Positions 4,508-63,522 of a stretch of DNA of 64,000 nucleotides are shown piece by piece. The translations under genes and the position numbers were made by a program. Positions within the stretch are counted from its first letter, which is position 1. Each line of letters starts with the position of its first letter. The stretch is from Lepidodermella squamata (Eukaryota; Animalia; Gastrotricha): positions 186,001-250,000 of the forward strand of contig JBLDXI010000012.1 in assembly GCA_047495785.1 (NCBI GenBank), read 5' to 3'. The notes under the pieces are model-generated. The model was not told where the DNA came from and ran no database searches. It saw nothing but the letters and a program-made list of their open reading frames with translations.

Positions 4508-4909
4508 ATGCTACTTCAAATAACGCTTTTTGCTACAATTTTCCTAACACTGCATCACGCAGTCGAACTGCGGCCTATAAACCCAGAAAAACAGGCGAAA
4601 GCGAGGCAAATTTTGCAGCTGATGCGGAGTCGAAGCGAAGTTCCAAGCGATAATAGGCGTTACCATTGGCAGACGGAAATAACCTCGGGGCAGATCGAAA
4701 GCCACGCTCCTCTCGTCGAGGCCTACGTTCAACTCCTGCAGGCTCAGATAAACGCCCTGGAACGGTTTCTTCTCGTCGACAGGCCGGCGGAGGATCGGGA
4801 GAAATCGCGGCAGGATATCGAGCGAGCGATTTTAACGATTAAAATGGAAATCTGGCGAGTCGCCTTCCTAGTTCACCGGAGCAGGTCTCGAGCTGATCGC
4901 GCGGTGTGA
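4508..4909 (+). CDS. Secreted small protein, helical, HWQ..AY..WR type
   Basis: caaaATG at 4508; signal peptide MLLQITLFATIFLTLHHA; AATAAA at 4981. Confidence 0.8.
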   Translation: MLLQITLFATIFLTLHHAVELRPINPEKQAKARQILQLMRSRSEVPSDNRRYHWQTEITSGQIESHAPLVEAYVQLLQAQINALERFLLVDRPAEDREKSRQDIERAILTIKMEIWRVAFLVHRSRSRADRAV

Positions 4910-4992
4910 TTTTTTTTAGACAACAAAACTTTATTATTCGAAATATGAACAAAGCAAATTATTAACTGTTTTTCAATAAGAATAAAATGAAA

Positions 4993-5418
4993 TTAATGTC
5001 CTTGGAAGGAGTGTTCTTTTTGAGTAACAGTTGATCGCGAACGGCCTTTCGAGCCGCGAACGCCGCTTTTCGCTACTCCCCCGGAGCCGAAGTTAACTTT
5101 CAGCTGAGATAAAGGCTTTTTCTTGGTATTCTTCGTATTGGCCGTTGGTGGGATGTTGTTGAGAACAACCGTTATCGGTGCTTTGTCGTGGTTGTGATCG
5201 GTGTGAGGCCTGCTTGAGACGGCTGTTTCTACCTTTGTATCCTTAACAGGTTTGCGAGTTCCAGAATGAACCATTCGATGAATCGCTGAGCTTCCAGATG
5301 TTCTAATAGCTGAATCGTCGTTATTCGCAGAGTTGTTGTTGTCCACTTGAAAATGGCAATCGACCTGACTCCAGACCAGGCCGAATAAAATGCATGATAT
5401 TTTCAAGAAAGCAGACAT
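4993..5418 (-). CDS. Secreted peptide precursor, basic/low-complexity
   Basis: aaaATG; signal peptide MSAFLKISCILFGLVWSQVDC. Confidence 0.8.
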   Translation of the reverse strand: MSAFLKISCILFGLVWSQVDCHFQVDNNNSANNDDSAIRTSGSSAIHRMVHSGTRKPVKDTKVETAVSSRPHTDHNHDKAPITVVLNNIPPTANTKNTKKKPLSQLKVNFGSGGVAKSGVRGSKGRSRSTVTQKEHSFQGH

Positions 5419-6643
5419 TTTTCGCGGTCAAAGTGAAATTTTGTCTGCTGAAACGCAATCAAAGCGAAAAAATAACCGACTGATCTGTCGAGGATGAAGC
5501 TGGAGACTTCTGAGATCGATATAGCCGTAATTACCCTTATCCAAGAGAGGATCGTATTTTTTATTGAGGTTTATACTCTCCGCACCACGCGATATTTTTT
5601 GTTCGATTTCGATATGTGCACGTCCTGTATTCTCGATTATGAGAAGCTGCCTACTCACTTTATGAAATAAATCACTCAATTTTGATTTTTTTCAGGAATT
5701 TTCTATATAAGGGCGCGAAGGTCACGAGAGATCAGACGTTTTTTGATGAGTTCCTATCAAGTAATCAAAAATTTATTTTAAGGGTTTTTCATCCTTTGAG
5801 TCATTAAATTATCGGACTTGAATTGAAATTGCCGGTTATCTTATGTATGGTGTCTCCAATTTTGCGGGGATATAGGTCATTTTAGGAATTACTCCGTGAA
5901 AATTATCCCAACTAGAGACATTTCTCGAGAGCAAATTTGAGATCAAAACCGTCTATTTTGAAATCTTGCAGTTTTTCTATTCCGCGTTGTCTGATATTTC
6001 CCTCCTCGGTATAACTCACCTTCGATTGTTAATGGTATGGGGAACTAGGATAATCTAATATTCCGAAAACTCAAAACTTCGGACAGCTATATTGAAAAAA
6101 CGGCGTGCATATTCGCATTTAAATAAGTACGCTTGTTTGACCATTTGCACTTATAAGAGGTTCCAGTAGCTGATAATTGAACATTTCTTTGCTCAAAATA
6201 TTCTACGTTTGAAACTGAGTAAGGCTCATAATTCACCTGGTTGGGAAAAACGATCTGGCCTAGAAAATAGCTTACCTATTTTTGATTGATTCCATCATTA
6301 CAACTGAATCTTTAGAGCTTCCTGACCTTTTTGAAAGGTTCCATTGCGACTTCATCACTTATAAATTCATTCTCTGGAATCGCTTTTTCCATCCAGGTAA
6401 GGTATGAGACTTACTCAGTTTCAAACGTGGAATATTTTAAGCGAAAATCTTTCAATTACCTGCTACTGGAACCCCTTTTAAGTGTAAATAGTAAAAAAAC
6501 GCTTACTTATTTAAGTGCGAATTTTACGACCCTTGAAAAAATCCGCCTTAATTTCGGAAATTATTCTCAGTCTGATTTATTTGAGAAAGTTCGAAGAAAC
6601 CAGTAAAAACCAGCCGATTTTCTATAGGGGATGATTCAAAATA

Positions 6644-7045
6644 TCAGTGATAACTAGGCAGGGCATGATATCTCTGCTTGCGCCTAGGTCCGTTCAGCTT
6701 CGGGCTAGTTTTGTTCCATTTCGCTATTTTCTCGTGAATCGCCATAAGATTAGCATAGTAGGCTTGAGTATTCTTCGGACTCGGCTGTGTCGCCTTGATA
6801 TCGTCCGCATTTTTCCTCTCAAACGGCTGAGAAGTCTTCATAACCATGAGCATAGGATGGTTCAGCACGTGGTTGTTTGTTAGATGCAGCGGCTGCCAAG
6901 TATCCTGGACCGTTCTAGTATCATAATTCACAAACTGCTGCTGTCTAGCGGCGGCGTCCTTGAAGTCAGACGATTGCATTGTCTCGATTGTCATAAGGCA
7001 TAATAACGACTGAAGAACTCGGCCAATCGAATGTTTATTCATCAT
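6644..7045 (-). CDS. Secreted peptide precursor (PxLM..[KR]T pair)
   Basis: Weak signal peptide (VLQSLLCLMTIETMQS); motif shared with neighbour at 7373. Confidence 0.7.
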   Translation of the reverse strand: MMNKHSIGRVLQSLLCLMTIETMQSSDFKDAAARQQQFVNYDTRTVQDTWQPLHLTNNHVLNHPMLMVMKTSQPFERKNADDIKATQPSPKNTQAYYANLMAIHEKIAKWNKTSPKLNGPRRKQRYHALPSYH

Positions 7046-7372
7046 CGTGAACTCAAAAAAGCTAAAAAAAAATGAGCCGAAGTGTCGAGCTTTTCCCTCC
7101 TACTCGTTCTCGCGTGGACACTAATAAAGGGTAATAAAATAACAAAAAATCAGGAAATGGCGCGTAAGCGGCGCTTTTAGCAAACCGAAAAGCTTTGATA
7201 AACTTCCGCTGATTTTTTTTTTATGCTGGGCACGATTCACACCTAGAAACTTATAATTGAAATATCTGAGTGATCAGTCAAAAAAAAATCATCCGATGAA
7301 TTATATTTCATTTTATTGTTTTTATTCAATATTGATCTCAAAGCTTCATTGATTAAAAAATCAATTTTGACC

Positions 7373-7714
7373 TTAATTAAGTTTTAAGGAAGACGTCTTG
7401 CGGGCAGGCAGTTTTTGATTGATGTAAAATACAAGTACGTCCTTTCGCGGCTTATTTTGGCCGAAATTATTCACGCGATCAACGCGCAGTTGTACTGAGT
7501 TTGCCGGGGCTGTTGGTTGTTGAAGAGACTGCTCAGCAGGCGGTTTTCTCTGGGTGTTCCTCGACGTCGTTCGAACAATCATGAGAGCTGGATAATGAAC
7601 ATTTCGACCTTTCGATTGCACCGGCGCAACTACCGTCGCATCATTTGCCTCGCAATTCAACAGCAGCTGGTTGATATAGATCACAAAAATCAAAATTATT
7701 GAGGTGGGGTGCAT
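7373..7714 (-). CDS. Secreted peptide precursor (PxLM..[KR]T pair)
   Basis: Signal peptide MHPTSIILIFVIYINQLLLNCEA. Confidence 0.75.
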   Translation of the reverse strand: MHPTSIILIFVIYINQLLLNCEANDATVVAPVQSKGRNVHYPALMIVRTTSRNTQRKPPAEQSLQQPTAPANSVQLRVDRVNNFGQNKPRKDVLVFYINQKLPARKTSSLKLN

Positions 7715-8043
7715 TATATATAATTCGGATCGAAAAAACAAGCGGTGTGATTGAATCCTGTGAAAATAACAATCGAGACGACTGGCTACTACTCCGAAAC
7801 GTGGGCGTGTCTCACGAATTTCAGCGGAAATAGCCGTTTAGCTGAAGAAACTGAGAAATCCGCCCGAATTTTCTCCCAAACACAAATAAGAAGTCAACAT
7901 TTAATGACCCGGAAATAACGCGCCTTCAATAACACATATGATTTTATTCAAATTGAATCAGAATCACGGCTATATTGAATCAGTGCATGATTTGTTTTGA
8001 GTGTAGCGTAGTTTTCGGGGGAGGTGTTTTGATCTACTTATTA

Positions 8044-8337
8044 TCAAGCTGCGATGAAGACGTTAGGGTAAATAGACTTTTTCCATCGCATCGGCCCTGC
8101 AAAAGCGCCAGCCGTTCGCTGAACCCCGAAGAAGCCTTTATGGGCTGCAGGTCGGCCGAAAGCCGGGGCCGAGTTCATTTTTTGACGTATATGCATGGCT
8201 TGCCACTTGCTGTTAGCCATAGCAAACTCATCGTCCAGATCAACATCGGCATTTTTAGAATTTGTTGGCCTTAATAGAACAAAGACAATGATACCGAACG
8301 CAACAAATAGCGAAAAATATCGGTTTGAATAAAGCAT
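8044..8337 (-). CDS. Secreted peptide precursor
   Basis: aaaaATG; hydrophobic N-terminus FSLFVAFGIIVFVLL; acidic then basic segment; TATAAA ~80 nt upstream. Confidence 0.8.
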   Translation of the reverse strand: MLYSNRYFSLFVAFGIIVFVLLRPTNSKNADVDLDDEFAMANSKWQAMHIRQKMNSAPAFGRPAAHKGFFGVQRTAGAFAGPMRWKKSIYPNVFIAA

Positions 8338-9375
8338 TTTTTCCGTTTAGTTTTTAATCAAAAATATGTATGCGCAATTTTTTTCCTAAACGGCTGTTAA
8401 TTAAAACCGCCAGCCTTTATATGGCCGTGTAAATTCGTTTTAATTTGAGGTAAAACGGAAGAGCATACTTGTAGATGCAAAAGAGAGTGGGCTGACTTTT
8501 GAGGTTTATTATTTTCATATTTCAATCAATAATGCAACTGCCGACCGCTTTGTTAATTAAACAGGTTCCAATGTGATGATGACCAGGGACCACGGATCAA
8601 CGAAACTGTGTTTTAATGGCATTTGGGATTAAAAAGCTTTAACAAAAGTAGAATGACGTCCACGGTAAAAATCAATTACGAACGAGGATATATAAACAAA
8701 TAAAGCTCATGCATTATTTTCAGTTCGGTAACTTTACTTCCAGTTAAAATTAGGACGTCTTCCAATTTTCCTCTGTCCTCAATAACGAGATCAGGACGTG
8801 AGTTATTCCAATATTCAGCATTCATCTTTCAAGGCCTCGTAAATCTGGTTGAAAATCCGTTCCTACGCGGACGGATATTTTATTTCTAAAAATAACTGCG
8901 CAAGATTGATAGCGGATATCTTTAATGAGCTCGAAAAATTGACCTAAATCCTACGCAGATGCTTTATATAAAATCCGCAAACCGGAGCAAGGTGTCATTC
9001 GCAGGTCTATGACCGGTAATTGCGCGAAGTTTCCATGGGTGAAAAAGCGGTGTGCCATAATTACGTCATTTCGACTTGGCTGTGCCCTCACTCTCCCACT
9101 AGCCACTCGAAATAACTCATTGCGGAGATAATTACTTTTTTCCATGCCATAATAGTTTACGAGTGGTTCTCTCGCCCTGATTTCAGGCCACGTATCGAGA
9201 GCACTTGTAAGGGAAAATTCTTTTCTAAAGCATAATTTAATATTCTCCACTGCAATTTTCTCGCGTAGCGCATATTCCCCGCATTTGAATAAATCCTATT
9301 GTTTCCGAATCATCTGCATTACAACCGTCCTCCTACAAATTGTTACATTTTCTATTAAACTAGAATTTTCAAAAA

Positions 9376-9702
9376 ATGTACGCTATCGCAGTTGTTTTGA
9401 TAATCGCTCTTGGATCAAGCGATGCTAACACCATTGCTGATAAAGATGACCTGAACTTCCACTGGCAGGCGCCGACAATGACTGTCGACTCTAAGGAGGA
9501 GTCGCAAAAACTGCTCGCAGCCTACTACGCGCAAACTCTGGACACCCTGAAGGAGATGAATAATAGCGGAGCTTTGGGCGAGCCTCAGTCCGACTACGAA
9601 CTCGAGACTACGGCCTATGCTATTGCCCTCAAGTACTGGCGAGATTACATCAAGTCGAACCAGGCCATCAAATCCATGGCGGACCGATATGTTCCTTACT
9701 GA
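9376..9702 (+). CDS. Secreted small protein, helical, HWQ..AY..WR type
   Basis: aaaaaATG; signal peptide MYAIAVVLIIALGSSDA; AATAAA at 9763. Confidence 0.85.
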   Translation: MYAIAVVLIIALGSSDANTIADKDDLNFHWQAPTMTVDSKEESQKLLAAYYAQTLDTLKEMNNSGALGEPQSDYELETTAYAIALKYWRDYIKSNQAIKSMADRYVPY

Positions 9703-9790
9703 ATTGAACTGTTTCACACACCTGCTAAAAGCGTTTTATTGTCTATCGAAAAGGATCAGTATAATAAAGTTTCGCTAATTATTGTTGCTA

Positions 9791-10123
9791 TTAATTGCTA
9801 GCCTTCGACAACGTTAGTGGGGGCTTGAGCGATGGCAAACGGCGGTGGTTAGATTTGGCAATAGCGTGTTTCGGATCGTTGTTTAAAACAGCTCGCATTT
9901 GAGTTGGACCGAAATTTCCGGTTCGCTGTTGATCAGTCCAGGTGAGATCGGCCGTAGCCAGATCTGTTGGTCCGCGAAGGTTGTCCCGCCATCTCGGATG
10001 ATTTGAACTTCGCAAGAGATAACGCTCGGTTTTAGGGTCCAACACCATAATGTCTCTGGCTAGGGCTAACCTTGCGTTGAAGCAGGCGAATATCAGTAAA
10101 GCAACTGAATTCAAGCGCGTCAT
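9791..10123 (-). CDS. Secreted peptide precursor
   Basis: Signal peptide MTRLNSVALLIFACFNARLALA. Confidence 0.8.
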   Translation of the reverse strand: MTRLNSVALLIFACFNARLALARDIMVLDPKTERYLLRSSNHPRWRDNLRGPTDLATADLTWTDQQRTGNFGPTQMRAVLNNDPKHAIAKSNHRRLPSLKPPLTLSKASN

Positions 10124-11724
10124 TTGTTGATGAAATGAATGAAATTAAGTTCAGCTTCAGTTCACTTCCCCTGTGTCTACTGCATCACTACGCATTCACT
10201 GTCAGAAAGTGAAGCTTGACAGAGATTCATGGACAAAATGCTGACTTTGAAGGTACAGGTTGTCAGCTATAGGGTTACCCGCAATAACTATAGAAACGGG
10301 CTGTATAGTCCTTAAGTCGCACTTGCTATCATTTTAATTATCATCATTTGAAATCATATGACCAATCAATTTCTTCGACGTCATCAATCTGCTGAGTTTC
10401 TCGCTAATGAACGAACATGGGCCCACCTTGACAGACATCCCAAGTTGTTCAAAAACGTCAAACAAAGTTGAAAACTTTGATTGAAATGTGAAATTATCGA
10501 TAAAAATGTTTCACCCATCGACGTAAGTAGCTAGAAAAGAGTTTTACAAGAGAAATTTCCTATGAATATTTATTTTCGGTAATTTTTTGAAAACTAAAAA
10601 CTACCCCCGAATGTCACTTTTTGGGGGTTCAAAAATGGGCGTTTACGGCTTGACCCCAAGACCACATCCTTGATCGGACTATCGCTTTCTTTGGTGGAAA
10701 TGATAGAACTGAGTCCATATTGCCACCGTTTGAAAAGATTTTCTTTCAAAAGCCACAGTTCACAAATTATTCATGGGTTTCGGATGCATTTTTCGGGATT
10801 CTGTTTTTGAATATGGCTAAGTGCAAAGGCTGAAATCGTTGCTAAGTTTTTTCAAATTAGTTCAAAGCAGCCTACGAAATTTCCCCATTTTTTTCATACG
10901 AAGCGCGAACACGGTTTCTCATCCGAAATGACGGCTGGAATGACGGCTGGGTGGCTTAGGAACAAAATTTCATTTTATAAGTCACATTTTAGGTTGTCGG
11001 ATGAAACAAGACATATGTCTGATAAAAAAAGTTTTCCTCACTTTGACATGCTCCCTCCCTATATTTCTCAAAATTAAGTGCTTCTACAAAGGCAATAAGG
11101 TAAGAGAAAAGAGAACCGCGCAAGGTGCAATTGATTTGGTTTTTGTTACAATTGTGCGAGATCGTGCTCCATTTCCTTTCAAATAACGGACCAGAATGAT
11201 GAACTTTTCACGGACTCTTCAAATAAACAGCTTGGATGAAAGTAGGATAATTTGAAGAATATGAATACATTCCTGAGGTGACTTCAAACAAGGACATTCT
11301 TATATTAGTGCAAAAAAATTAGAGAAAAAATGAGCAGTTGGCACAAGTTGGATGGATCCAAAATATTTTTTCGAACATTGTTCTCACAACTTTTCTCGTC
11401 CTAAAATTTCATTAGAATTCTAATTAGCACCTCATAAATATTTATACTTTTAAACCTATTAAAACTCCCGGAGGAACTTTCCCTATTTTTGTTTTTTTCG
11501 AACCCAAGCTGGAGGGTGAAATTAGTGCGTGCGAGTTATTTTTAGCTTCAGCTCAAGGGGCTCCTAAACGTGCGCGTCTTCTGAATTTCACTGTATTGCT
11601 TAGGACACGTCGTGTTCAAGAACAAGATGTCTTTGCAAGTGTTTGGTGTCAAGAACATTGAAAATGAATCATCTCAATCAAACGAGCTATGGCTTAGTTA
11701 TTGAAGTGAAGGAAACATCGCTCG

Positions 11725-11860
11725 ATTGCCAAAAATCGGGAAAAATCGTAAAATCACCAAAATTTGCAGATAAATCGGTAAACACACCTTGTCTCAAATA
11801 TCATACATTTCTGAATAAAGGCCGATTTTAAACATGGTTTCACCAACTTCGCCTTATTTC
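11725..11860 (+). repeat. Dispersed repeat copy (homologous to ~30735-30880 on the minus strand)
   Basis: AAAAATCGGGAAAAATCGTAAAATCACCAAAATTTGCAGATAAATCGG..ACACACCTTGT..ATTTCTGAATAAAGGCC aligns to the reverse complement of the second copy; boundaries approximate. Confidence 0.65.
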
Positions 11861-12051
11861 AAGGTATATTAGGTGAGAGAATGTTTGTTTAGATAATATA
11901 TTACTACACCAGTAAGTGAACGTTGAGATTAAGATCGGATTAACTCGTAAACAAGTCTCAACCCGAGTTATTCAAACACTCATCAAAAGAACTGAACGAG
12001 TCATAGCTATAATTTTTATTTGGCTAATATATTTCGGGCGAAAATGCTAGC

Positions 12052-12378
12052 CTAGGCAATATCTACGAGGAATTTTCGTAATCGTTGGTCGATTCTGCGG
12101 AATTTTTCTTCAGTGGACACTCCGCTGTTGTCTGGCAGCCGCTTCAATATCGGTAAGGTTCTGAGAGCTGCCGGGACGAATCGCGATTTCGAAAATATTC
12201 TCTGAGGAACCGTTGAATCTATCGCAATAGGAGGGTCGAAGCCGATTGGTCGCAACAAGTCGTTGCTTGGTAGAAAATTCATAGAACTCAACTGTTGCCG
12301 GTATGGCGGATTCCAACTAGCAGGAGCCCCCAAAGCTCCGGCGAGTAAAAATACAAAAATCACGTAGATATTGAGCAT
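12052..12378 (-). CDS. Secreted peptide precursor, VPAA family
   Basis: aaaATG at 12378; signal peptide MLNIYVIFVFLLAGALG; SRFVPAALRTL; KR/RR sites. Confidence 0.85.
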   Translation of the reverse strand: MLNIYVIFVFLLAGALGAPASWNPPYRQQLSSMNFLPSNDLLRPIGFDPPIAIDSTVPQRIFSKSRFVPAALRTLPILKRLPDNSGVSTEEKFRRIDQRLRKFLVDIA

Positions 12379-12602
12379 TTTCCTGCGCAATGAGGCTAAA
12401 TTCCCGGGCCCATATATACCCAGGTGTTTTGCGGATATCAACCGAAGCATGTAACGAATAATAATTGATAGTGCCCGGGGTCATCGTCTGGCCAGTCACG
12501 CGGAAAAACGCAATTCTCAATACAGTCGATCTTTTAATTGAGATTCAAGGGAATTCACAAACAAAATAATGGATAATTTTATATAGAGGTGTTGACCATT
12601 AT

Positions 12603-12857
12603 TCAAGCTCTGATGTAGTAGACCACCTTTCCTGTTCTGTCCAGCATTTTCAGGGCGGCTGGGACATTGCGAGCTCTGAAGAAGGGTCGAGTAGTTGTAG
12701 TAGTTGTTGTAGTTGCTTCAACGATTGGCTCAGGAGGCGTCGTCTTCACTGGAAACGGGCCGAGTCGCACGTCATTCAACTCGGCAGACTCCGAGTCGTG
12801 ATCCCATGCTTGGATGACAGTTACAGCTAAAACGAAGAAAAACAATTGCCGAAGCAT
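12603..12857 (-). CDS. Secreted peptide precursor, VPAA family
   Basis: Signal peptide MLRQLFFFVLAVTVIQA; poly-Thr; ARNVPAALKML; TATAAAA ~60 nt upstream. Confidence 0.85.
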   Translation of the reverse strand: MLRQLFFFVLAVTVIQAWDHDSESAELNDVRLGPFPVKTTPPEPIVEATTTTTTTTRPFFRARNVPAALKMLDRTGKVVYYIRA

Positions 12858-13113
12858 TTTTTTGCGCCAATCTGAAAAAAAATTGAATTCGCACCGGTTT
12901 TCTATTCGTCCTCTTTTATATTAAGTCGGGGCGGTCTTATAATCAAAGCTTCCGCTTAGCCCACTTGCATAAATGACCGCGACGCTTAGATAATTCCATA
13001 ATAACGCATGGGCGATAATTGGAAAAGGATTCGCATTATTTATCAAGAAAAAAATGTGTGTCAAAAATGCGTTTTATTTTATTATAATATTTTTTTTCAT
13101 ATGCAAGTATGGT

Positions 13114-13344
13114 TTAGTAACGATGGTGATGCTTCCGGTATTGCGGGGTTAAATTGCGTTGATACTCCTCGTCATCGGTCAGACTCCTCTCCGGCAGTTT
13201 TCGATGCTTTCGCCACGATAACGGAAGGAAGATGCGACTTGCAAATTCAGCCATGTCGTCCTCGTCCGAATCTTCAATCGGCCGGCTTGAAGCAATGTCC
13301 CACAATAGAATGATAAGGAGGGAAATTATAATACAAATTTTCAT
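13114..13344 (-). CDS. Secreted precursor, acidic spacer plus cationic/His-rich peptides
   Basis: Signal peptide MKICIIISLLIILLWDIASS; EDSDEDD..WRKHRK..DDEE..RKHHHRY. Confidence 0.85.
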   Translation of the reverse strand: MKICIIISLLIILLWDIASSRPIEDSDEDDMAEFASRIFLPLSWRKHRKLPERSLTDDEEYQRNLTPQYRKHHHRY

Positions 13345-13569
13345 TTTTTCAGCTGAAATAAATGTGATTTAAGAACATTTTTTACTGGCGCCACGGCCCT
13401 CAGGGTGCTGTTCGGTCATTCTTTCGCTATTTCGTGACGAGATGTTTTTCTCATGCGTCATCATGACTGACCACCGACTCAAGAGACATGGTGTCTTTAA
13501 TATATTATTTATTTTTTTGATATTATTTTATTATACCATTCGTCAGCAAAATATGAGGATGCACTGCTG

Positions 13570-13881
13570 TTACTCATCGAGTTCATCGTAAGCTGAAATG
13601 AACTGGGCGAGATTGTTAGCCAGAAAAGTCGGGGATGAAGATCGTTTCGGGACCCAGAGCGTTTTCGCAGCAGCCGGGACGAACTTGGGCCGGTAAACCA
13701 CTTGAGCCGCCTCAGCGGAAGGATTTTGCGCCGCTGAGACGACGATTACCGGCTTTGGATTTCTCATCAGGCGAGGGTCGTCGAATTCTGAATCCTCATC
13801 CTCATGTGCCCATCCTTGAACCAGTGCCACAGAAGCTGCCAGGAAATAAGCGAAGAATAATAAGGTGAAGAATCTAGCCAT
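13570..13881 (-). CDS. Secreted peptide precursor, VPAA family
   Basis: ATG at 13881; signal peptide MARFFTLLFFAYFLAASVALVQG; PKFVPAAAKTL. Confidence 0.85.
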   Translation of the reverse strand: MARFFTLLFFAYFLAASVALVQGWAHEDEDSEFDDPRLMRNPKPVIVVSAAQNPSAEAAQVVYRPKFVPAAAKTLWVPKRSSSPTFLANNLAQFISAYDELDE

Positions 13882-15351
13882 ATTGTATAAATTAGGTAAA
13901 AAACAAGGTGGATAGATTTTCGTTATGCAGCTACTGTGTGCTCTCTCAATCGCTATAAGAGTCAACAGCAGACGTTTTCCGAAAATACATATCACCCACT
14001 TCCGGAACAGGTGCGAGCGTGCGTTTTATACGTCGCTCGCATTAAATCGGTCTGGACGTGAGCGTAATTTCCCCTCGCGGAGCCCACCTACCTCATTTCA
14101 TTAGTTGTGCGTGCCGCATCACGCAAATCGTGCCGACTGCTCAAATTATTGTCGCATGACTCGTCGTGTCAATACGTGACCGGATGTCAACCGGCCAGGG
14201 ACTCGAAATTCGATATTAATCTAGCGCCATTAATTATTATGATATACAACAGACAAGTTGTCGACGTCGTGATTTGGCTTCAAGTCATCGGTGATGACGA
14301 CAAAAAAATAATTGAATTATAAAAAGTAAAACGTAGCTGACCGTTAATGAGTGACGAATCTGTCGAATTTTGTAGATACAAGTTTGTCGACTTGGAAAAG
14401 AAGGAATGTTGGTGTGATTGGCATTCACCTAGATGTTTTAGATCTTCAGGATGCTCCCGTCCACCTCAAAAGTGAGATGCCAACAGTGTCGCCAAGAAGT
14501 GAAGCCAAATCGATTACTGTTAAGTATCTAGCGAAGTTCCTCACCTTTTGAATCTTGAATAGAATATAAAGTGCGTGGGAATAAATTAATCGCATGCAGA
14601 GAGAGGCGGATTATCCACTTGTGTAAAAACATCAGAAATAGTAATGCCATCATTTTATATAGAGTAGTAGAAATCCCTAATTTCGGCCACTTCCTAAATT
14701 CGCCGGCTGAGACCCAATTTTTTAGACCTAATTTAGACGAAATGCTACGCAGCAGTTTATTATTTTTGCATGAAACAAAAAATTAGTTTTTTGCGCTAAT
14801 CTGTTTCATGATTTTTCAAGCGCGTGATCGTAAAAAAAATTCGCAAATGGGTGCGGGGGTTCATGCCGTTACATGTGAAGTCAATGAATAGCTCACAGGT
14901 AAAGCACCAAAGACGAATTTAACGGTATCAAACTTGAGGCAGCCAGTTCCCTAATTTCGGCCAGGAGTCCAAGTTACTAAATTAGCCAGCGGCAGGTAAA
15001 ATCGTCCAGATTTGCGGAAACCGGCATTCAGTTACTTCTTCTATACCTAATTCTGTATTTGCCAACAAATTAAAAAAAATTCACCCGAGTGGCAAAGCAG
15101 GGTAAACCAAAAAATGGCCGAATTTATGGCTAATTTTCAATCTTCCGATGGTTAACTTTTCCCAGCTCTTAGCTCCATTTTTATATCGTTTGACTCATCG
15201 TTTAACGATACCGGATACAAAACAAATTTTGCTAAAATCCAATTTTGCCTGTCAATGGTCAATTTACTTAGTTTGGCTATAATTATAAGCGCGCAATCAA
15301 AGGTCATCAATATTGTCTTTAAAAAAAGTCCGATTATTTTCGCCAAAATTT

Positions 15352-15870
15352 TCAGATGAACCTATCCGCCGCTGGCGTGAAAACGTAGAACGAGCCTTCG
15401 GTAGGGCCGGCAGTGTGATGATGACGCGGCTGAGGCCCTCGCAGTACATACCGAATCGGGCCTGTTCGCGGCTTTGCCACCGTGATATCGCCGCTCTTTT
15501 TCGATATCAGGAAATCATTACCATTCGCCACGTATTTCGCCTCGAAATCATCCGGCTCGATCAGGAAAATTGTATTATCGTCATCGTCGTCTTCAATTAT
15601 GTTCTTCAAGTAAGGACTGCTATCAGCAATTAGGTACTCCTCATCCAGGGGCGAGTAGGTAGGACCGTTATCTTCGAATGAATCGTATTCAGGATAGACC
15701 TCGGGCGATCGTTTCATTAGCAGATGATACAGATCGTCAGGGTTACCAATCGGCTGTCTGGCTGGTCGGAAGCTACTGACTCGACCTGACGGGCCAAACG
15801 GCTGTCTGATGAAGAAGGCCGATGCGCAGCCGATGACACTGAGTAAAATTGGGGTTGAAAAAGACAGCAT
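15352..15870 (-). CDS. Secreted acidic precursor
   Basis: Signal peptide MLSFSTPILLSVIGCASA; KR and KK sites; poly-Asp. Confidence 0.85.
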   Translation of the reverse strand: MLSFSTPILLSVIGCASAFFIRQPFGPSGRVSSFRPARQPIGNPDDLYHLLMKRSPEVYPEYDSFEDNGPTYSPLDEEYLIADSSPYLKNIIEDDDDDNTIFLIEPDDFEAKYVANGNDFLISKKSGDITVAKPRTGPIRYVLRGPQPRHHHTAGPTEGSFYVFTPAADRFI

Positions 15871-16058
15871 TTTCGAGGTAAGAAAAACGAAAAATGGTCT
15901 TTTTCACTGAATCTTAGTTCGGGGAAACTTGATAATCCCCAAGGCTAATCCTTTACCTTTGACTTATTCCCGTTCGAACGTAATTAACAAAGACATCCTT
16001 CCTCAGTTTATTTGAGTTCAACGACAAAAAAGTACAAAAATAAGATTAAAAAAACTGC

Positions 16059-46163: not shown

Positions 46164-46269
46164 ACATAGCAGAATTATTTCACCAATAAACAAAACAGAA
46201 TTGCTGTATTTTTACGCTATTTTTTTTATTTCCCAAGGAAGGGTATATCGTAAACAGGACAATGAATAA

Positions 46270-51893: not shown

Positions 51894-52190
51894 ATGGCAA
51901 CTGTTCTACGACCAACTGCTCATATTTGGCTGCTAGGTTTAGCCAGCATCGTTATCATTGCTGTATCACGATGCAGTGCAGATAGCGGGAACGACATCTA
52001 TCTGGATTCGAGCTTTGACGAAAATCCGTTCTTTGGCCGGCATTTCGACGAACGCAAAAGTGCACCGGCTAAAATTGTCAACGCCATTCGATACCAGCCC
52101 CGGCTAGAACCACGATCCTCATCGCCGAAAGCTGGTGTTAGAGCCAACCGCGTTATCATGTCGAAAAAGAAGCCATGGAAGCTGTCATGA
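51894..52190 (+). CDS. Secreted peptide precursor
   Basis: ATG at 51894; signal peptide ..HIWLLGLASIVIIAVSRCSA; ENPFF-GR; RK site. Confidence 0.84.
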   Translation: MATVLRPTAHIWLLGLASIVIIAVSRCSADSGNDIYLDSSFDENPFFGRHFDERKSAPAKIVNAIRYQPRLEPRSSSPKAGVRANRVIMSKKKPWKLS

Positions 52191-52879
52191 AATTATTCGT
52201 GATACATGTTGGTTGGATGCCACCGATTTAAATCAGTCACAATAGCGTTATGATATCTTTAATAAACCCATTTCAAATAAATAAAACTAACTCAGTGAAT
52301 TCAGCGTCTTTGATGTCTGGATGTTAATTGTCGTGGGATAGAAGGTTTCACGTATAATTAAAACGGTCAATTGTTCCTGATTCACATTATTAGACAAAGA
52401 CTATTTAATTAGTTGTGAAACACTAATTGAAACCGACACTGAGACAGAGTTTAACATGGGATTGAATATAAGATCAAGAAAATTATTCCAAAAGTTATCA
52501 GCCTCGCCGGATTTCGGTCATTTCCAGTCCTAGGACAAGTAGACTGAGCCAGAAGTTGCATCTATTGCCGCTTATTGTTTTGATTTCGATATAATGCTTA
52601 TTATTATCTTTTCCCAAAAGACTTCACCTTGTTTACTAGCGGATTTGAAGACAAATCATTTTCGTGTAATCAATCAGAATCAAAATCATTAAATTATAGT
52701 AATCCATCGCGTCCACAGCAGTTTTTTAGTGTTCCAGGTCCTTGTTTTCCCTTTTCACAGTAATCCATCGCAGCCCAAACACCCAAACAATCGCGGAAAA
52801 ACTTGTTGTTCTCAGCCAGACACTATTTAAACTCAGGTCTTTTCACTGTCTAGGTACAATATCTTTCGCGAGGTAAATT

Positions 52880-53338
52880 ATGTCGACCACATCGATTGTC
52901 CTACTAGTACTACTTAGGCTGGGATCAAGCTGCTTGGCAAGCGTCTATGATGCTGATTCAGAAGAATACTTCACTGAGGCTAAGCGATTCGCTGTCGTGA
53001 AGGAAGGTGTCTTCGGCGGATCATTCCGGCGTAATTCTCTCTACAAACAGGCAACACTACCCCCTGCTCCAGTCGACCATCCAAAAATGCCATCAGCAAT
53101 TCATGCAATAATGTCAGCAAGTAAGCAAGATAACAAGGAAAGTTATCAAAGCAATCCGGAGCGAAGCGATATCAAGAATGGCCAAGCTTGGGTTAAGATG
53201 CTATACTCGGGAATCGATAAAGCAGATCGGCCAGCTGCGATTAAGTATCCCGACTACGCAAAGAAGATCGCACAGCTTTCGAAACTCAGTATTGTCAAGA
53301 TGATGAACGAGGCGTTCGGAAAGCCTATTACTGAGTAG
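52880..53338 (+). CDS. Secreted precursor, [KR]R..K.G family
   Basis: Signal peptide MSTTSIVLLVLLRLGSSCLA; KR-FAVVKEGVFGGSF-RR. Confidence 0.87.
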   Translation: MSTTSIVLLVLLRLGSSCLASVYDADSEEYFTEAKRFAVVKEGVFGGSFRRNSLYKQATLPPAPVDHPKMPSAIHAIMSASKQDNKESYQSNPERSDIKNGQAWVKMLYSGIDKADRPAAIKYPDYAKKIAQLSKLSIVKMMNEAFGKPITE

Positions 53339-53557
53339 AGACACAAACACTTTCTTTCATTTCGTATTATCACGTGTGTATTAGATGTTCACCATTTGCC
53401 GGTCGAAAACCTTAATCAATGTTTCATGAATTAGAGTAAAACGTAATGGTATAGAACTAAGCTCCGTTTCTGGTAATCCGGGTAGTAATCACATCCCACG
53501 TGGTCATTCTGTTTCCCCGAAACATTTTCACCAGAATCATCGTCAGATCAACCGAAA

Positions 53558-53983
53558 ATGTATCCCCGATTGTTTCTGGTTCTTATCTTCGCTTTCTTGG
53601 ATACCAGCGACGGATTCAGCAGAGTTTCGCATCCACAGAGCAGTTATGCTGGTTATTTCATGCGACTTCCGACGAGCGCCATCAAAAGGGTGGTGCCGTT
53701 TAAGAGCGGGTTTGTCGGTAGTAATTACAAGCGGACCGTTTCCCTTTCTCCCGGCTTCCGAGATCGCGCTGTTGCTCCGGGGAAGCCCTACGAAAGGAAT
53801 TATATGAATCCAGCGGCTCAACCGAATGCTTTGGATCTAGGCGCCGAGCGAATGCGTAATTTCATGTCATTCCGTCTTCGAAACGGAGCCCTCGGACAAA
53901 CTTGGGTGCGCAAGATTACGCGCCCACGCCAATCTTCTTCTTCATACTTTAGAGGAAACACGGCTCAGCGAAACTACTACTAA
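53558..53983 (+). CDS. Secreted precursor, [KR]R..K.G family
   Basis: aaaATG; signal peptide MYPRLFLVLIFAFLDTSDG; KR-VVPFKSGFVGSNY-KR. Confidence 0.88.
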   Translation: MYPRLFLVLIFAFLDTSDGFSRVSHPQSSYAGYFMRLPTSAIKRVVPFKSGFVGSNYKRTVSLSPGFRDRAVAPGKPYERNYMNPAAQPNALDLGAERMRNFMSFRLRNGALGQTWVRKITRPRQSSSSYFRGNTAQRNYY

Positions 53984-54176
53984 CATTATTGATATAGTCA
54001 AGGATCCTCAATTATTGAGAGGTATGATAAATAAAAGCATCTGGCAACAACGTGTCTTTTTGTAACCATCAATCTTCGGCGGAAAATGATTAATTTTCGT
54101 TTTCTCAGAGACTCTATAGCGTTAATCCTATAGGCCATATGAAAAGGAGAACTCAATCAGCTGACACTTTTTCAAA

Positions 54177-54530
54177 ATGAATTTCACACATGTTTCAATT
54201 TTACTATTCCTATTATCAGTGATTCGCTGCCAAAATGCATCGAAGTCCAGGTTTCAGTGTGACATGTCGCCTTTTGTCAGCCGCGTACGACGCTTCGCTT
54301 CTTCAAAACAAGGAATTTTCAGCTCCATGCAGCGCTCTGGATTCAGCAGTCGCGAAAAGCATCTTCGCCGTAATTTTGTGTCAGCGGCCCCTATTGCCGA
54401 TTTCCGAGACGCTCGCTTGGGGCATTTGGTAGCCACAAATCGAGCCCAACATCAAACCCGAGTTCGAGCGATTCCTCGCGATATTTCAGGCTATTTTACA
54501 GGCAGGGTGATCAGTCGCAGATATTTTTAG
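54177..54530 (+). CDS. Secreted precursor, [KR]R..K.G family
   Basis: caaaATG; signal peptide MNFTHVSILLFLLSVIRC; RVRR-FASSKQGIFSSM. Confidence 0.87.
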   Translation: MNFTHVSILLFLLSVIRCQNASKSRFQCDMSPFVSRVRRFASSKQGIFSSMQRSGFSSREKHLRRNFVSAAPIADFRDARLGHLVATNRAQHQTRVRAIPRDISGYFTGRVISRRYF

Positions 54531-54824
54531 ATTCTCACATTGCCACAATAAAGAAATCGTTATTTCATTTCATAGGATACAAATAAACTGGTGTATCTAG
54601 TATTGTACAGCCCTCAAGGCAAGGTTATAATCGATTGAAAAGCTAATTAGCTACCTTATATTCCTAGAAAAGTCACTAATAAAATATCGTTTGTTTACAA
54701 GAAAAAGCGCTTAGCATCCAGCTTAAGTTGCGAAGGAGTACGTGGTATAATCCTACCAACATCAATTTTATACCGTGAAAAACTTGTGAATGGTTCAGTC
54801 TAGAAAGAACTGTACTCGGCTGCA

Positions 54825-55145
54825 ATGTCAACAAAACAGCGAGTTTTCGTTACCTTGATTTTTTTCCTATCATTAATAGGACAGTCTGCCGATTGCGTGC
54901 CGATTGCCGGCAGTTCAGATGCTTCTAAATTGAACAAAAATGATCAGAGAGGTTTCTTTGCAAACTTGGAGCGATTCTTCCTGCGTACACGTTCGAGAGC
55001 GATTCATGCGAAAAATCATTGGACCATTGGCCCTTCCGCCCGTTACGATTACAAAGACGCCTTGCTGAGACATCCGATCTCGCCTAACAAGAATCGCGCA
55101 TCAGTTTACTACCAGCAGCTTGTTCGCCAGCCAACGGCGATTTGA
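54825..55145 (+). CDS. Secreted peptide precursor
   Basis: Signal peptide MSTKQRVFVTLIFFLSLIGQSADC; RTRSR site. Confidence 0.86.
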   Translation: MSTKQRVFVTLIFFLSLIGQSADCVPIAGSSDASKLNKNDQRGFFANLERFFLRTRSRAIHAKNHWTIGPSARYDYKDALLRHPISPNKNRASVYYQQLVRQPTAI

Positions 55146-55374
55146 GACATCTGATCTTACTCGATGGAAAGTACTAGAATTCCTATTTTATCCGATAGTA
55201 AAATCAGAATAAAACAGCACTCAGCGCCCACGGGTATCGCGTGTACTTATAATTAGAGGGCCATGACGCCATCGGATTGCAGCAGGATGATTAAAATTCC
55301 CCGCAATGACCAACGTCAAAAATATCAATTGATATTTCATATTTTTCTTCGTTTCTCTTTTACTTGACATTATT

Positions 55375-55635
55375 ATGGCAGCAAGAGCACTTTTAGCGAT
55401 TTTCTTAGCAATCCAACTAATCGGAATGCTACATGACTTGCCGATCTCAGTCGAAGCTCAAATGGCTCACAAAAACAGCTACATCGTGGTGGTAAATAAG
55501 CACTATCCATTGGTGCGACCCAGGCAGAAGAATGTACTCGATAGCAAAACGTTGGCTGCCGTCTCCGTCAATGGCCCGATTAATAATAATAGGAAGTCAC
55601 ACGTACTCTTCTCATCTGCGTCAGGTTTCGTTTAG
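55375..55635 (+). CDS. Secreted peptide
   Basis: Signal peptide MAARALLAIFLAIQLIGMLHDLPISVEA. Confidence 0.8.
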   Translation: MAARALLAIFLAIQLIGMLHDLPISVEAQMAHKNSYIVVVNKHYPLVRPRQKNVLDSKTLAAVSVNGPINNNRKSHVLFSSASGFV

Positions 55636-55764
55636 AACGCAAGTGAACTGCGATCCTATTTAAATCCACAGTGACTAATTGCTTTTTGGGGAAGAGCTTA
55701 TGTTCTCAACAGTTCACACTGAAAATAAAACTGGCAGAGGTCAAATCAATTTTTTTAAAGCAGG

Positions 55765-56076
55765 ATGTCAATTTTTTTGTTTGTAGCCTTTTTCGGGGTC
55801 TTGCTACAGGCAATGGCCATAAGTAGCTACAATTATGAAGATATCACAGATCAAACCGGTTACCCGGTCTATGCGGCTAGTCAATTCGATGATACACCGA
55901 GAATGAAACGAGATTCCGCCGCAAGATTGCGCAGTCATCAGGTCCCAGGACTTCTGCGTGTTTCCACGCCAAGAATCTGGAGTGCTCTGCAGTCAAACAC
56001 ACCACGGGCAAAGCAGCGTCTCACGGTTATAAGAGTGCCTGACAATAGATTACGTATTCTCGTAAAAGCCGGTTGA
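55765..56076 (+). CDS. Secreted precursor with RMKR site
   Basis: Signal peptide MSIFLFVAFFGVLLQAMAISS; acidic pro-region; RMKR; terminal Gly. Confidence 0.87.
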   Translation: MSIFLFVAFFGVLLQAMAISSYNYEDITDQTGYPVYAASQFDDTPRMKRDSAARLRSHQVPGLLRVSTPRIWSALQSNTPRAKQRLTVIRVPDNRLRILVKAG

Positions 56077-60320: not shown

Positions 60321-60530
60321 ATGAATTTTTCGCTTATTTACTTATGCAGCGCCATCGTGGCACTGGCGTTGGTCGTATTCTCGGCGCAAGCTGCGGAAGA
60401 TGCAGCTGCTGGTCCTTTCTTTTACAAAAGCCGCAATAAGATCATGTACCGAGTTCCGGCTAACGAGAAGCTATACAGATCGATGGCCAGACAGACACCG
60501 AAACGAATGCGGCTGTCGATCAAAAATTAA
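60321..60530 (+). CDS. Secreted peptide (PF[FY]Y.SR pair)
   Basis: ATG at 60321; signal peptide MNFSLIYLCSAIVALALVVFSAQA. Confidence 0.86.
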   Translation: MNFSLIYLCSAIVALALVVFSAQAAEDAAAGPFFYKSRNKIMYRVPANEKLYRSMARQTPKRMRLSIKN

Positions 60531-60943
60531 AGAGACAATAAGAAAATTCGCACGTTAATTCGATAATATTATTCATTAATTTTTATTAATTCGAAATAAT
60601 TTTACCCTTGGTGACTGTTATGAGTCATTTCGCCCCCTACGTCATCGAAATAAAAGATCTTTACAGTGACATCTATTGGAGATCTGAGAATGACATCATG
60701 TGTGGGCGTGCTTTTAGTAGTTGATGAGGCATCTTTTGTTTCGCACTTTTTCAAAAAACGCGAATGAGTGCAACGAAAATTTGAGAATTTCAATATACTT
60801 AACAGCAGAAAAAAGATAAAACACATGTATAATTAAGTGAAATTAACTTGAATGAGGAGGATGTTTGAATATTATTATTTGTCAGAGTGGGTCATTTCGC
60901 CATCTTCTACTCCGGTATTTTCATACTGACACTGGAAATTAAC

Positions 60944-61177
60944 ATGAATAAATCGGCTGTTTTTATCCTCATTGCTGTCATTGCCATTGCAGAGGCACTT
61001 CCGATGTCGAACCCGAGAAGTGGTGGCAAAGTTTTCAGCGTGATTTCGCCACCGTCCGTGCTGCGCCGCTTTTTGCTGCCAGGATCGGCTCCGAAAGTGT
61101 TTTCTGCACGATGGAAAAATCCGAAAACAAAGCGCAAAGCTCCCCAGGCGATAAACCTCGATTCAGACTTGTTCTAG
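60944..61177 (+). CDS. Secreted basic peptide
   Basis: aacATG at 60944; signal peptide MNKSAVFILIAVIAIAEA; KVFS twice. Confidence 0.86.
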   Translation: MNKSAVFILIAVIAIAEALPMSNPRSGGKVFSVISPPSVLRRFLLPGSAPKVFSARWKNPKTKRKAPQAINLDSDLF

Positions 61178-61353
61178 AGCATCAGTTAATTGATATTTGC
61201 CATTGTATTTTATTCAGGAAATACTTCATATTGATGTTACTATGTAGCGCAAATTTGGAAAAATGTGAGAAATTACAAGTTGTAAACAATCCATTCATTG
61301 GAGTTTTCTTTCATTTCTCCGCTGAGATATTTTTCGAAAATAAATCAAGAAAT

Positions 61354-61557
61354 ATGTTTGGCTGGAAGTTTTTAGCCATTTACGTGGCTGCATTTCTCGT
61401 GACGGTGATGGGGTCTAACAAGCCGTTTTACTACAACAGCCGAAAGACTATCATTCAACCGGCGAGTTTCCAAAAGTTGGCACCGTCGGTCGAGGACAAA
61501 GCCTGGCGTGTTTTGGATGCAAACCGCAAACTTGCTAAATATCAATCGAGATCTTAA
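61354..61557 (+). CDS. Secreted peptide (PF[FY]Y.SR pair)
   Basis: ATG at 61354; signal peptide MFGWKFLAIYVAAFLVTVMG. Confidence 0.84.
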   Translation: MFGWKFLAIYVAAFLVTVMGSNKPFYYNSRKTIIQPASFQKLAPSVEDKAWRVLDANRKLAKYQSRS

Positions 61558-62165
61558 CGCGCACTTTACCTGTCGTAGGGCAAAAAACCAATTCACTAGA
61601 GACTATACAACACCCCCGCATTGCCGGTGAACTGGCCTACTTCAAACCGAACTGTCAAGCCCCTTGTTTTCATAGAGTGGAATAATTATTATTGTTTTGA
61701 ATCATTCGGGAGAAATACTTAATAAAAATCGATTGTCAATAAAAGTACAATAAAGTTTATATCCTTCAGTTGACTTCTCAAGTGGTTAAGTTCCGAAAAT
61801 TGACCATTAATCTATAATGTTCCGGCCCCTCTGTATTTTTTTTACGAGCGGAAAGCATGTTTTCTACCGTATAAGGATTATACAAGTGAGCAAAACAAGG
61901 CTATTTTTTTGTTTCCGGCCATGATGGTCCAAACGACGCAAATGCCTGATTCATTGCGACATCTATTTTTCGCCAGGACTTTTAATTGTATTTCCTGTTA
62001 TTTTTGCCCGTTTTTAGCCTTTACAGTCGATAATTAGCAGAGAATGCAAGGTTGCGACGTACTGACCCATGTCTTTTTTTTAAAGAATTCTCATGCATAT
62101 TCGATTTTTGATTTTGTCACAGAAGTGAAACATTGTTTTTTCAACATTTTAGATACTTTTTCTAA

Positions 62166-62531
62166 ATGAGGACTTTCGCAATATTCGCCGCGATTTTAGC
62201 GACGATCATCGGGTCTCTCGAGGCTAACCGATTTTCCAGCGCTAAATCTTCGGCCTACGGCGAGAATCGTCAAATCGCAGACTTGATATACGTTCCGTAT
62301 CAGTCGAAATCAGCTATCAGCTACGCTGTTAATCCGAAACAAACTGTCCTAGTCAGCGTTGATACCCGCAACAAGCCAAAAGAGGAGCTGCTCGTCAATC
62401 CAAAACTGCTATTCACCGCTGATCTGAAAACTGGCGTGAAGTCTGCGATAAACGATGACCGTCGAAAACGGCTATTGCGGTCGGCTTGGTTCGGGAATAA
62501 CAATAACGCCCCCGTAGTATTTGTACCTTAG
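62166..62531 (+). CDS. Secreted peptide precursor
   Basis: Signal peptide MRTFAIFAAILATIIGSLEA; RRKR site. Confidence 0.88.
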   Translation: MRTFAIFAAILATIIGSLEANRFSSAKSSAYGENRQIADLIYVPYQSKSAISYAVNPKQTVLVSVDTRNKPKEELLVNPKLLFTADLKTGVKSAINDDRRKRLLRSAWFGNNNNAPVVFVP

Positions 62532-62792
62532 ACGGAAATTAATGATGCGTGAATTCTTGAAAAAATCGATTGATTTTATTAGGCTAGTTTACACCGCATA
62601 GATTGATACTGATGAAAATAACCGTGATTGGTGCAGAATTTGGTACAGAAGGACAAGTAAACAGGAATCATTAAATCAACTTTCTTTGATGTGAAAACAC
62701 GGTCACGAAATTGAAAGCATCCGGTCAATTAAGCTGGTTGCCGCTGAAATGTAGGTTTCCGCATTCGCTTTAACATCGCTAATTCTGCAAAC

Positions 62793-63095
62793 ATGAATTC
62801 TTTTTCAAATAAATCCATCTTTGTCTTCACTTTGCTTATGATAGCTTTTTTCAATTGTGAGACAAATGCATTCGGCAGCTCTCTTATAAGCCACAGCCAT
62901 GACAGTCGTCAATCAAAGTCTGCGCCTGATCCTCGGCTTAGGGGCCTACAGAGGCCGAAACGTTACCTTGTAAGAGATGGCGACTTTATTCTAGGCTCGC
63001 TGATTTCAAATCGACCGAAGCGTTTGTTAAAACTGGACACAGACGGCGCAGCTCCAGTTTGGCAATACGAGTACGAGCTCGATCACGATCACTAA
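62793..63095 (+). CDS. Secreted multi-peptide precursor
   Basis: Signal peptide MNSFSNKSIFVFTLLMIAFFNCETNA; two RPKR sites; AATAAA at 63171. Confidence 0.88.
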   Translation: MNSFSNKSIFVFTLLMIAFFNCETNAFGSSLISHSHDSRQSKSAPDPRLRGLQRPKRYLVRDGDFILGSLISNRPKRLLKLDTDGAAPVWQYEYELDHDH

Positions 63096-63210
63096 AATCA
63101 TAGATTTCCAATTTGACTCACTATTATAGAGCATCAGCTTAAATGTTCTGTGATCATAGGTTTATTAGTGAATAAAATTAACTCGAAAAATCTAGCATCC
63201 TATTTGCAAT

Positions 63211-63522
63211 TTATCCTAGAACAGAGCGCAGTAAATTTTCTTCAGGATCATTCCATTTGCTGAGAGATGAAAGCTGATAACTAAGGTCGCCCAGTGAATT
63301 CGATTTTGCGCTGCTGTAAGCGCTGAGAGTGTTGCCGAGTTGATTGTACAACAGCGAATCTTCATCGATAGCATCGTCAGAATCGTTCCAATAGGGAAGC
63401 GGCTCGTAAAGCCAGTAAGGATCTTGACGGCGATTGGATGAAGACGCCAGCGGTTTTGCACTGAGAGTCGATATTGATAGGACCAGAAGCAAGAATGCTA
63501 AACATGTTTTCACCGCGAGCAT
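63211..63522 (-). CDS. Secreted peptide precursor
   Basis: Signal peptide MLAVKTCLAFLLLVLSISTLSA; RR-QDPYW; terminal Gly. Confidence 0.87.
   Translation of the reverse strand: MLAVKTCLAFLLLVLSISTLSAKPLASSSNRRQDPYWLYEPLPYWNDSDDAIDEDSLLYNQLGNTLSAYSSAKSNSLGDLSYQLSSLSKWNDPEENLLRSVLG

Follow-up and report, generated by a model that had tools for sequence, protein, structure and literature searches.

A 64,000-nucleotide stretch of genomic DNA from the gastrotrich Lepidodermella squamata (positions 186001-250000 of contig C12 in a 121.2-Mb assembly, G000, of 151 contigs), hereafter the window, is packed with small genes whose products begin like secreted proteins and contain almost no Cys. The evidence indicates that these open reading frames (ORFs) are genuine genes: they are transcribed, have a single exon, and encode small proteins whose N-termini a heuristic scores as secretory. 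An earlier note on this DNA had described a cluster of 59 kb; that span is the central part of a supercluster that extends over at least 220 kb and comprises at least 200 genes. The locus is probably, though by no means certainly, a birth-and-death supercluster of lineage-restricted, single-exon genes for small, secreted, Cys-free polypeptides that are likely to be specific ligands or bioactive peptides.

Signal peptides were called with a heuristic of our own, which asks whether an ATG-initiated ORF of at least 50 amino acids (aa) has an uncharged hydrophobic core close to its N-terminus and a polar stretch after it. In the window, which has a guanine-plus-cytosine (GC) content of ~41% and returned zero matches when scanned for tRNAs and Rfam families, 70 ORFs pass, against 0-8 (mean ~4) in 30 order-2 Markov shuffles. 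The excess is ~17-fold, and the roughly 70 small ORFs with signal-peptide-like starts reported earlier are thus real. Once antisense overlaps and weak cases are dropped, 60 firm genes remain between 4508 and 63522, or one in every ~0.98 kb, and their median pitch is 673 bp. In another six to eight genes, among them 4505-4909 and 40426-40680, the start is an internal Met. The A-rich start context holds as well, with A at position -3 in 75% of genes and in 34% of all ATGs. AATAAA or ATTAAA lies within 250 nt past the stop in 59 of 68 genes (87%), versus 39% at random places, and codon-usage scores exceed zero in frame for 94% of 205 cluster ORFs, compared with 6% in shifted frames.

The near absence of Cys was also borne out: Cys accounts for 0.11% of residues in mature parts versus 1.61% in nearby long proteins, and 56 of the 60 firm genes have none there. 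Charge varies widely: it is -5 or lower in 12 of the 60 products and +5 or higher in 29, about half being cationic, and a layout of signal peptide, acidic stretch, and basic/aromatic tail recurs in many cluster proteins. One minus-strand ORF of 83 aa, 20135-20386, passes the signal-peptide test yet carries four Cys, lacks a poly(A) signal, and is hardly covered by complementary DNA (cDNA); it is probably no gene, and it provides a useful internal negative control.

The extent of the cluster was scanned in the window plus 200 kb of flanks, the left limit of the data being C12:86 kb. Signal-peptide-like ORFs number ~10 per 10 kb from C12:86 kb to ~300 kb and 0-2 per 10 kb thereafter; by interval, the flank scan counted 105 between 86 and 186 kb and 74 in the window, then 30 from 250 to 300 kb and 8 from 300 to 350 kb, with density tapering across 250-310 kb. 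The drop to 8 ORFs in the last 50 kb indicates a local cluster, as does the sparser average of the published annotation given below. The cluster described earlier is therefore real, but its ends belonged to the window only, and the array runs on at both sides. Elsewhere in the genome the heuristic gives ~1.6-3.6 false hits per 10 kb, and seven such hits in 19 kb of other DNA contain Cys, unlike the cluster genes. The published assembly of L. squamata, which belongs to the sister group of flatworms, comprises 122 Mb in 157 contigs at 43% GC, and its BRAKER set of 28,377 genes averages one gene per ~4.3 kb (PMC11660948). The genome paper is silent on secreted proteins or peptides and on trans-splicing (PMC11660948).

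RNA evidence comes from one 5.9-kb stretch, 17000-22900, in run X1, which is clearly cDNA, as its contigs end in poly(A) or poly(T) and in a template-switch oligo. All seven signal-peptide ORFs in this stretch are covered by X1 contigs, intergenic depth is zero, and the seven genes are thus transcribed. Three transcripts, each unspliced and ~0.35-0.45 kb long, are end-defined or nearly so: 17674-18028 (minus), 18896-19275 (minus), and 20385-20815 (plus). The contig of the first has a loose poly(T) end at 17674 and 18 leader letters past 18028, whereas that of gene 18975-19247 ends at 19275 in the template-switch oligo. The third is a single unspliced contig of 452 nt, in which the oligo precedes 20385 and poly(A) follows 20815. 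The X1 RNA of this stretch shows no splice joints; three apparent "opposite strand" joints look like assembly artefacts. Several cluster transcripts reach high contig depth in this whole-animal cDNA, although depth is a poor measure.

The 18 letters joined to the mRNA at 18028 are foreign to that position, where the genome carries a pyrimidine tract followed by AG. They trace to 28 genomic copies, several in tandem arrays spaced ~0.65-0.85 kb. The leader exon ends in ...GATTTGTGTCTAAG and is followed by GTATG, as in L025-L028 (for example, C17:1137993-1142021); these copies are therefore spliced-leader RNA genes. A literature search for this spliced-leader sequence found nothing. Some cluster genes are trans-spliced, and two others have their own capped starts: at two of the three mapped 5' ends, the cap-dependent template-switch oligo sits directly on genomic sequence. 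An operon resolved by the spliced leader was considered and rejected. Acceptor-like sites lie upstream of only 13 of 68 genes, versus 8% by chance, so the array is not an operon; besides the separate 5' ends, the gaps between cluster genes measure several hundred bases, whereas an operon of this kind would show poly(A)-to-acceptor gaps of ~100 nt.

Selection was gauged with a DNA run, X2, of a strain or close species ~2% different. Four ORFs in 17000-22900 hold 15 listed differences, 13 synonymous and 2 non-synonymous, and 13 of the 15 fall at third codon positions (p 3e-5). Five of six differences are synonymous in gene 18975-19247, likewise in 19583-19945, and all 12 listed indels lie outside ORFs. 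The four sampled genes are now under purifying selection, small as the sample is. Fast divergence, as had been proposed for the locus, is thus not the present state of these genes.

Most of the genes are indeed mutually dissimilar, with 186 of 217 ORFs remaining singletons in BLASTP at E<1e-3. A sensitive short-word search recovers 16 pairs at 28 bits or more, versus 0 in decoys, and 33 versus 2 at 24 bits; the detectable pairs are mostly neighbours 0.5-4 kb apart, with identities from 75% down to 28%. Short motifs extend these relationships. A [FY][HN]WQ motif after the signal peptide (HWQ family) gives nine profile matches, all in C12:134-196 kb. H[YF]DS[YF] occurs in 36503 (three copies), 40426, 44043 (two copies), and three genes to the right of the window, and EAR[YF] stands at the end of the signal peptide in 17793, 18975, 19583, 27399, and 31108, the last two with the EARF form. 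A C-terminal NGRP-type motif recurs in genes up to 90 kb apart, including 29666-29953, and 21438 and 20422 are alike in their C-terminal motifs. The genes form long same-strand runs, with orientation switching at 47.3-47.6 kb. The locus thus shows the marks of a tandem multigene family, namely co-oriented neighbours, graded paralogy, and confinement to one place. Because same-strand runs are long, paralogues mostly lie less than 4 kb apart, and the HWQ matches all fall in one interval, the sequence supports growth of the cluster by old local tandem duplication, and on this point the earlier interpretation stands.

Searches beyond the genome yielded no Pfam family and, in three outside searches, no homologue. 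A Pfam scan of 60 proteins gave no real match (one chance hit, E 0.0016), a word-index search with 36503-37144 among 5.8 billion proteins returned no homologue, and neither did an outside profile search with the HWQ alignment. The sole match of 15352-15870 in an exhaustive HMMER search, a zinc-finger protein (P0110) with five identical low-complexity repeats, was judged spurious. None of ten window proteins was present in an exact look-up in the protein collection, and a literature search for comparable clusters found nothing relevant.

Whether the products are peptide precursors or mini-proteins varies with the gene. The KR, RR, and RxKR sites pointed out earlier exist but are not enriched: 205 proteins hold 360 dibasic sites against 360 expected from shuffles, KK is depleted, and only Rx[KR]R is modestly raised (29 versus 17 expected). 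Nor is there any enrichment of G[KR][KR], the amidation signal (13 observed versus 19.1 expected), although isolated cases such as 27964-28251, which ends in RFG, occur. Internal repeats are significant (p<=0.01) in 8 of 199 proteins, ~2 being expected, and seven of the eight lie in the window. The prohormone architecture attributed to the cluster thus holds in the loosest sense only, given these counts and the hairpin family described below.

Judged from their sequences, 36503-37144, 46270-46845, 31108-31509, and 44043-44294 are convincing multi-copy precursors. In 36503-37144, three putative peptide copies end in H/N-Y-D-S-[YF], each with KR 0-3 residues after it, and H[YF]DS appears twice in 44043-44294. 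In 46270-46845 the xGGxYxKMxT peptide is present twice, each time flanked by dibasic sites, together with an FGS repeat, and 31108-31509 has KR-flanked peptides and an internal repeat. The only conserved segment of the trio 52880/53558/54177 is a dibasic-flanked [KR]R-x4-K-x-G-x-F peptide, and conserved cores abut KR or RR in the H[YF]DS[YF], GGxYxKM, and KRF families. The HWQ member 9376-9702 was modelled as a helical hairpin, with a predicted local distance difference test score (pLDDT) of 88-97 over residues 40-104; for the HWQ family, the prediction is a folded hairpin of helices and not a pro-region that is cut. A fold search with this model returned generic helical matches only.

In the proposed scheme, each gene would yield its own polyadenylated mRNA of ~0.35-0.45 kb, as seen for the three end-mapped genes; most genes appear to use their own start site, with a minority receiving the spliced leader. 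The product would enter the secretory pathway via a cleavable N-terminal signal peptide and be exported as a short Cys-free polypeptide of 30-190 residues. A minority may be true pro-peptides from which cuts at dibasic sites release one or several short linear peptides (H[YF]DS[YF], the GGxYxKM pair, KRF-type); other products may be single small proteins, some folded like the HWQ hairpin, and many would combine an acidic stretch with a basic/aromatic tail. The array would have grown by local tandem duplication old enough that only short motifs stay common, with the copies now presumably held by purifying selection. The products would act extracellularly as specific ligands or bioactive peptides and not as bulk material; specific roles are favoured because the genes are diverse and the four measured genes constrained.

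Several points weigh against this reading. Secretion is a prediction of our own heuristic; the RNA evidence is limited to seven genes in whole-animal cDNA, and the selection test to four genes and 15 differences, the best-supported ones only. Dibasic and amidation sites occur at no more than their chance frequencies, and putative processing is plausible for a subset of the products only. Language-model neighbours of the proteins are peptide-hormone precursors, with scores of 0.81-0.87 that lie below the reliability line. Secreted proteins that are small, disordered, and acidic or basic might just as well be parts of a matrix, cuticle, egg shell, or adhesive.

A classical neuropeptide or peptide-hormone repertoire, in which most genes would encode prohormones of neurons or endocrine cells, cut by convertases and acting on G protein-coupled receptors (GPCRs), appears rather doubtful. 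The signal peptides and Cys-free pro-regions fit it, as do the multi-copy, KR-flanked conserved peptides in 36503, 40426, 44043, 46270, and 31108, the purifying selection in the measured genes, and the weak language-model neighbours; C. elegans and similarly tiny animals have well over 100 neuropeptide genes. However, dibasic sites at the shuffled expectation, an amidation signal below it, few proteins with internal repeats, zero matches to Pfam neuropeptide families among the 60 proteins scanned, and the predicted fold of the HWQ family all speak otherwise, and more than 200 genes at one locus is far above known neuropeptide complements. Bulk secretion by a few exocrine or epidermal cell types, for cuticle or scales, adhesive-tube glue, mucus, or egg shell, is somewhat unlikely too, even though the cuticle of gastrotrichs is scaled and they bear adhesive tubes (PMC11660948), many of the products are strongly acidic or basic and look disordered, and several transcripts show high contig depth, poor measure that it is. 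Structural secretions are usually repetitive low-complexity families, whereas here nearly every gene is unique; the purifying selection in four genes also argues against bulk roles, and conserved short motifs beside dibasic sites suit ligands better.

Host-defence antimicrobial peptides like those of amphibian skin would combine a signal peptide, an anionic spacer, a KR site, and a cationic linear peptide, and exactly this layout is found in 24857, 24039, 32796, and 13114. About half of the products are cationic, they are linear and Cys-free, and many antimicrobial peptide families likewise occur in tandem clusters. The reading is nonetheless quite improbable, since many products are acidic or long and the 13:2 ratio of synonymous to non-synonymous differences, from four genes, is unlike that of the usual diversifying immune genes. 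As to origin, a de novo gene nursery that repeatedly captured a signal-peptide-like start, instead of an old duplicated family, would account for the many ORFs without a detectable paralogue and for the three outside searches without a homologue. It is a distinctly improbable origin in view of the common gene design and long co-oriented runs, the neighbouring paralogues at graded divergence (75% to 28%), the motif families that span the cluster and are confined to it, and the strong constraint. That the ORFs arose by chance, or are the first exons of larger spliced genes, is scarcely credible. The ORFs are short, and the heuristic does produce false hits elsewhere; but neither explanation fits the excess over shuffles, the complete unspliced cDNAs bounded by cap-oligo and poly(A), the lack of splice joints in the RNA run, or the synonymous bias of the variation, and for the seven cDNA-tested genes both are effectively refuted.

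Features along the window (positions in the window; aa, amino acids)
Feature	Position	Strand	Evidence or remarks
HWQ-family small secreted-protein gene	4505..4909	+	Start at second Met of ORF 4448-4909; family-profile match at C12:190505-190906, E 1.5e-26; in HWQ alignment
Ten small secreted-protein genes	4993..16541	mixed	Signal-peptide test, Kozak context, poly(A) signals; starts (-) 4993, 7373, 8044, 9791, 12603, 13114, 13570, 15352, 16059; (+) 9376
77-aa secreted-protein gene	17000..17233	-	X1 cDNA contig 17048-17220; flanking intergenic depth ~0
Complete mRNA of 63-aa gene (ORF 17793-17984)	17674..18028	-	Trans-spliced to spliced leader
mRNA of 90-aa EARY-motif gene (ORF 18975-19247)	18896..19275	-	Own 5' end
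120-aa EPRY-motif gene	19583..19945	-	X1 contigs 19516-19684 and 19736-19850
Complete mRNA of 65-aa acidic protein gene (ORF 20422-20619)	20385..20815	+	One contig
Two genes, 21438-21680 and 22139-22336	21438..22336	-	X1 contigs 21496-21656 and 21976-22265
Run of 19 genes, 18 on minus strand	24039..36113	mixed	Many with signal peptide, acidic stretch, basic/aromatic tail
213-aa three-copy precursor (putative)	36503..37144	-	Translation; internal repeat score 74, p<=0.01
68-aa gene, duplicated with its DUF1566 neighbour	38179..38385	-	72% identity to copy 88 kb leftward
Embedded 381-aa bacterial-type secreted protein (Lcl_C/DUF1566), not of the small-gene set	38892..40037	+	Pfam PF07603, E 3e-43
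Putative precursor ending in ...HFDSYYNE-KRR, H[YF]DS[YF] family	40426..40680	-	Translation
Eight genes	42207..47279	mixed	(-) 42207, 43463, 44043, 44725, 46270, 46977; (+) 43071, 45882
Head-to-head switch from minus-strand run to plus-strand run	47280..47608	.	Strand order
Ten genes	47609..56076	+	Include neighbours 52880, 53558, 54177
Embedded intronless CFAP58 gene, 929 aa	56188..58977	-	Pfam PF21771, E 2e-101
Four genes: 60321, 60944, 62166, 62793	60321..63095	+	62793 with repeated RPKR-led segment
103-aa acidic secreted-protein gene at right edge of window	63211..63522	-	Cluster goes on beyond

Among the larger genes embedded in the array, CFAP58 is a housekeeping cilium gene unrelated to the cluster and the lone minus-strand gene inside a plus-strand run of small genes. 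Its homologues are found throughout animals, none above 55% identity, and in a tree it forms a long branch weakly beside flatworms. A possible tunicate affinity, probed by way of the GH6 domain, returned no match, but as control genomes failed to match as well, this carries little weight. A second intronless paralogue (L002:1318-4011, minus strand, 897 aa) shares 67% DNA identity with it over the central part. The closest public CFAP58, at 55% identity and also intronless, lies on a 5.5-kb metagenome contig (L029, ENA), where it is flanked by ORFs of 80 and 255 aa that have signal-peptide-like starts and no similarity to cluster genes. The distant relative behind this contig may share the habit of small secreted genes, the sequences themselves being unrelated.

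The Lcl_C/DUF1566 gene, encoding a secreted protein of ~380 aa with tandem domains, has a second copy at C12:136959-138095. Each copy adjoins one of the two related 68-aa secreted-protein genes, and by sequence comparison the pair is a segmental duplication, its copies 88 kb apart. As the family is otherwise bacterial, the gene is a candidate for horizontal transfer, now with eukaryotic signals (an A-rich start and a poly(A) signal). At the right edge of the cluster, in C12:252-270 kb, five intronless genes of class C GPCR type are interleaved with small secreted-protein genes (for example, L013:2284-4641, minus, and L014:7111-9543, plus); a Pfam scan of two of them found ANF_receptor and 7tm_3 domains in both.

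Several known systems share features with the cluster. Neuropeptide and prohormone genes such as C. elegans flp and nlp are likewise short, with a signal peptide and a Cys-poor pro-region, and a subset of the cluster genes resembles them in having conserved short peptides repeated and flanked by KR or RR. Neuropeptide genes are, however, mostly dispersed, whereas the cluster genes are co-located in far greater number per locus, without overall dibasic or amidation enrichment, with mostly one unique product per gene, and without a match to a known family. The skin peptide clusters of amphibians (dermaseptin/temporin) are also tandem arrays encoding an acidic spacer, a KR site, and a cationic Cys-free peptide, and their paralogues also differ greatly in the mature parts. 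In frogs, though, the signal and spacer regions are highly conserved, while the pro-regions of the cluster are unalignable; the cluster genes are moreover intronless, and no gland is known. Hessian fly SSGP and C. elegans nlp/cnc clusters resemble the locus in having hundreds of small orphan signal-peptide genes in dense arrays, with little similarity between families. Those genes belong to parasitic or immune settings and evolve under diversifying selection; the gastrotrich lives freely, and purifying selection acts on the genes sampled here.

The mouse ESP cluster is alike in encoding lineage-specific small secreted peptides, which are sensed by class C (V2R) receptors, and a class C GPCR array adjoins the gastrotrich locus. 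There is no homology between the two, and ESP has tens of members where the cluster has hundreds. A ligand-receptor link between the cluster products and the nearby class C GPCRs is pure speculation. It is quite unlikely that the cluster amounts to a private chemical vocabulary, in which several hundred lineage-specific peptide ligands, multiplied on the spot and each maintained by selection, would be read by lineage-specific receptors such as the adjoining class C GPCRs; if it did, it could be a "wireless" internal code in a few-neuron animal or a pheromone code like that of mouse ESP and V2R.

Clusters of small secreted peptides are thus already known; what is new here is the scale, the heterogeneity, and the constraint, in a phylum with a single genome. 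Homologue-less genes of 55-215 codons are easily lost by annotation pipelines, and a sizeable share of the secretome may therefore be absent from the gene set as published. Provided that its products are bioactive, this single locus would offer a few hundred peptides and mini-proteins that have yet to be studied, in a phylum with almost no molecular biology. The locus bears on how orphan secreted genes arise, duplicate, and drift past recognition yet stay selected, and on the upper size of an animal's secreted-ligand repertoire.

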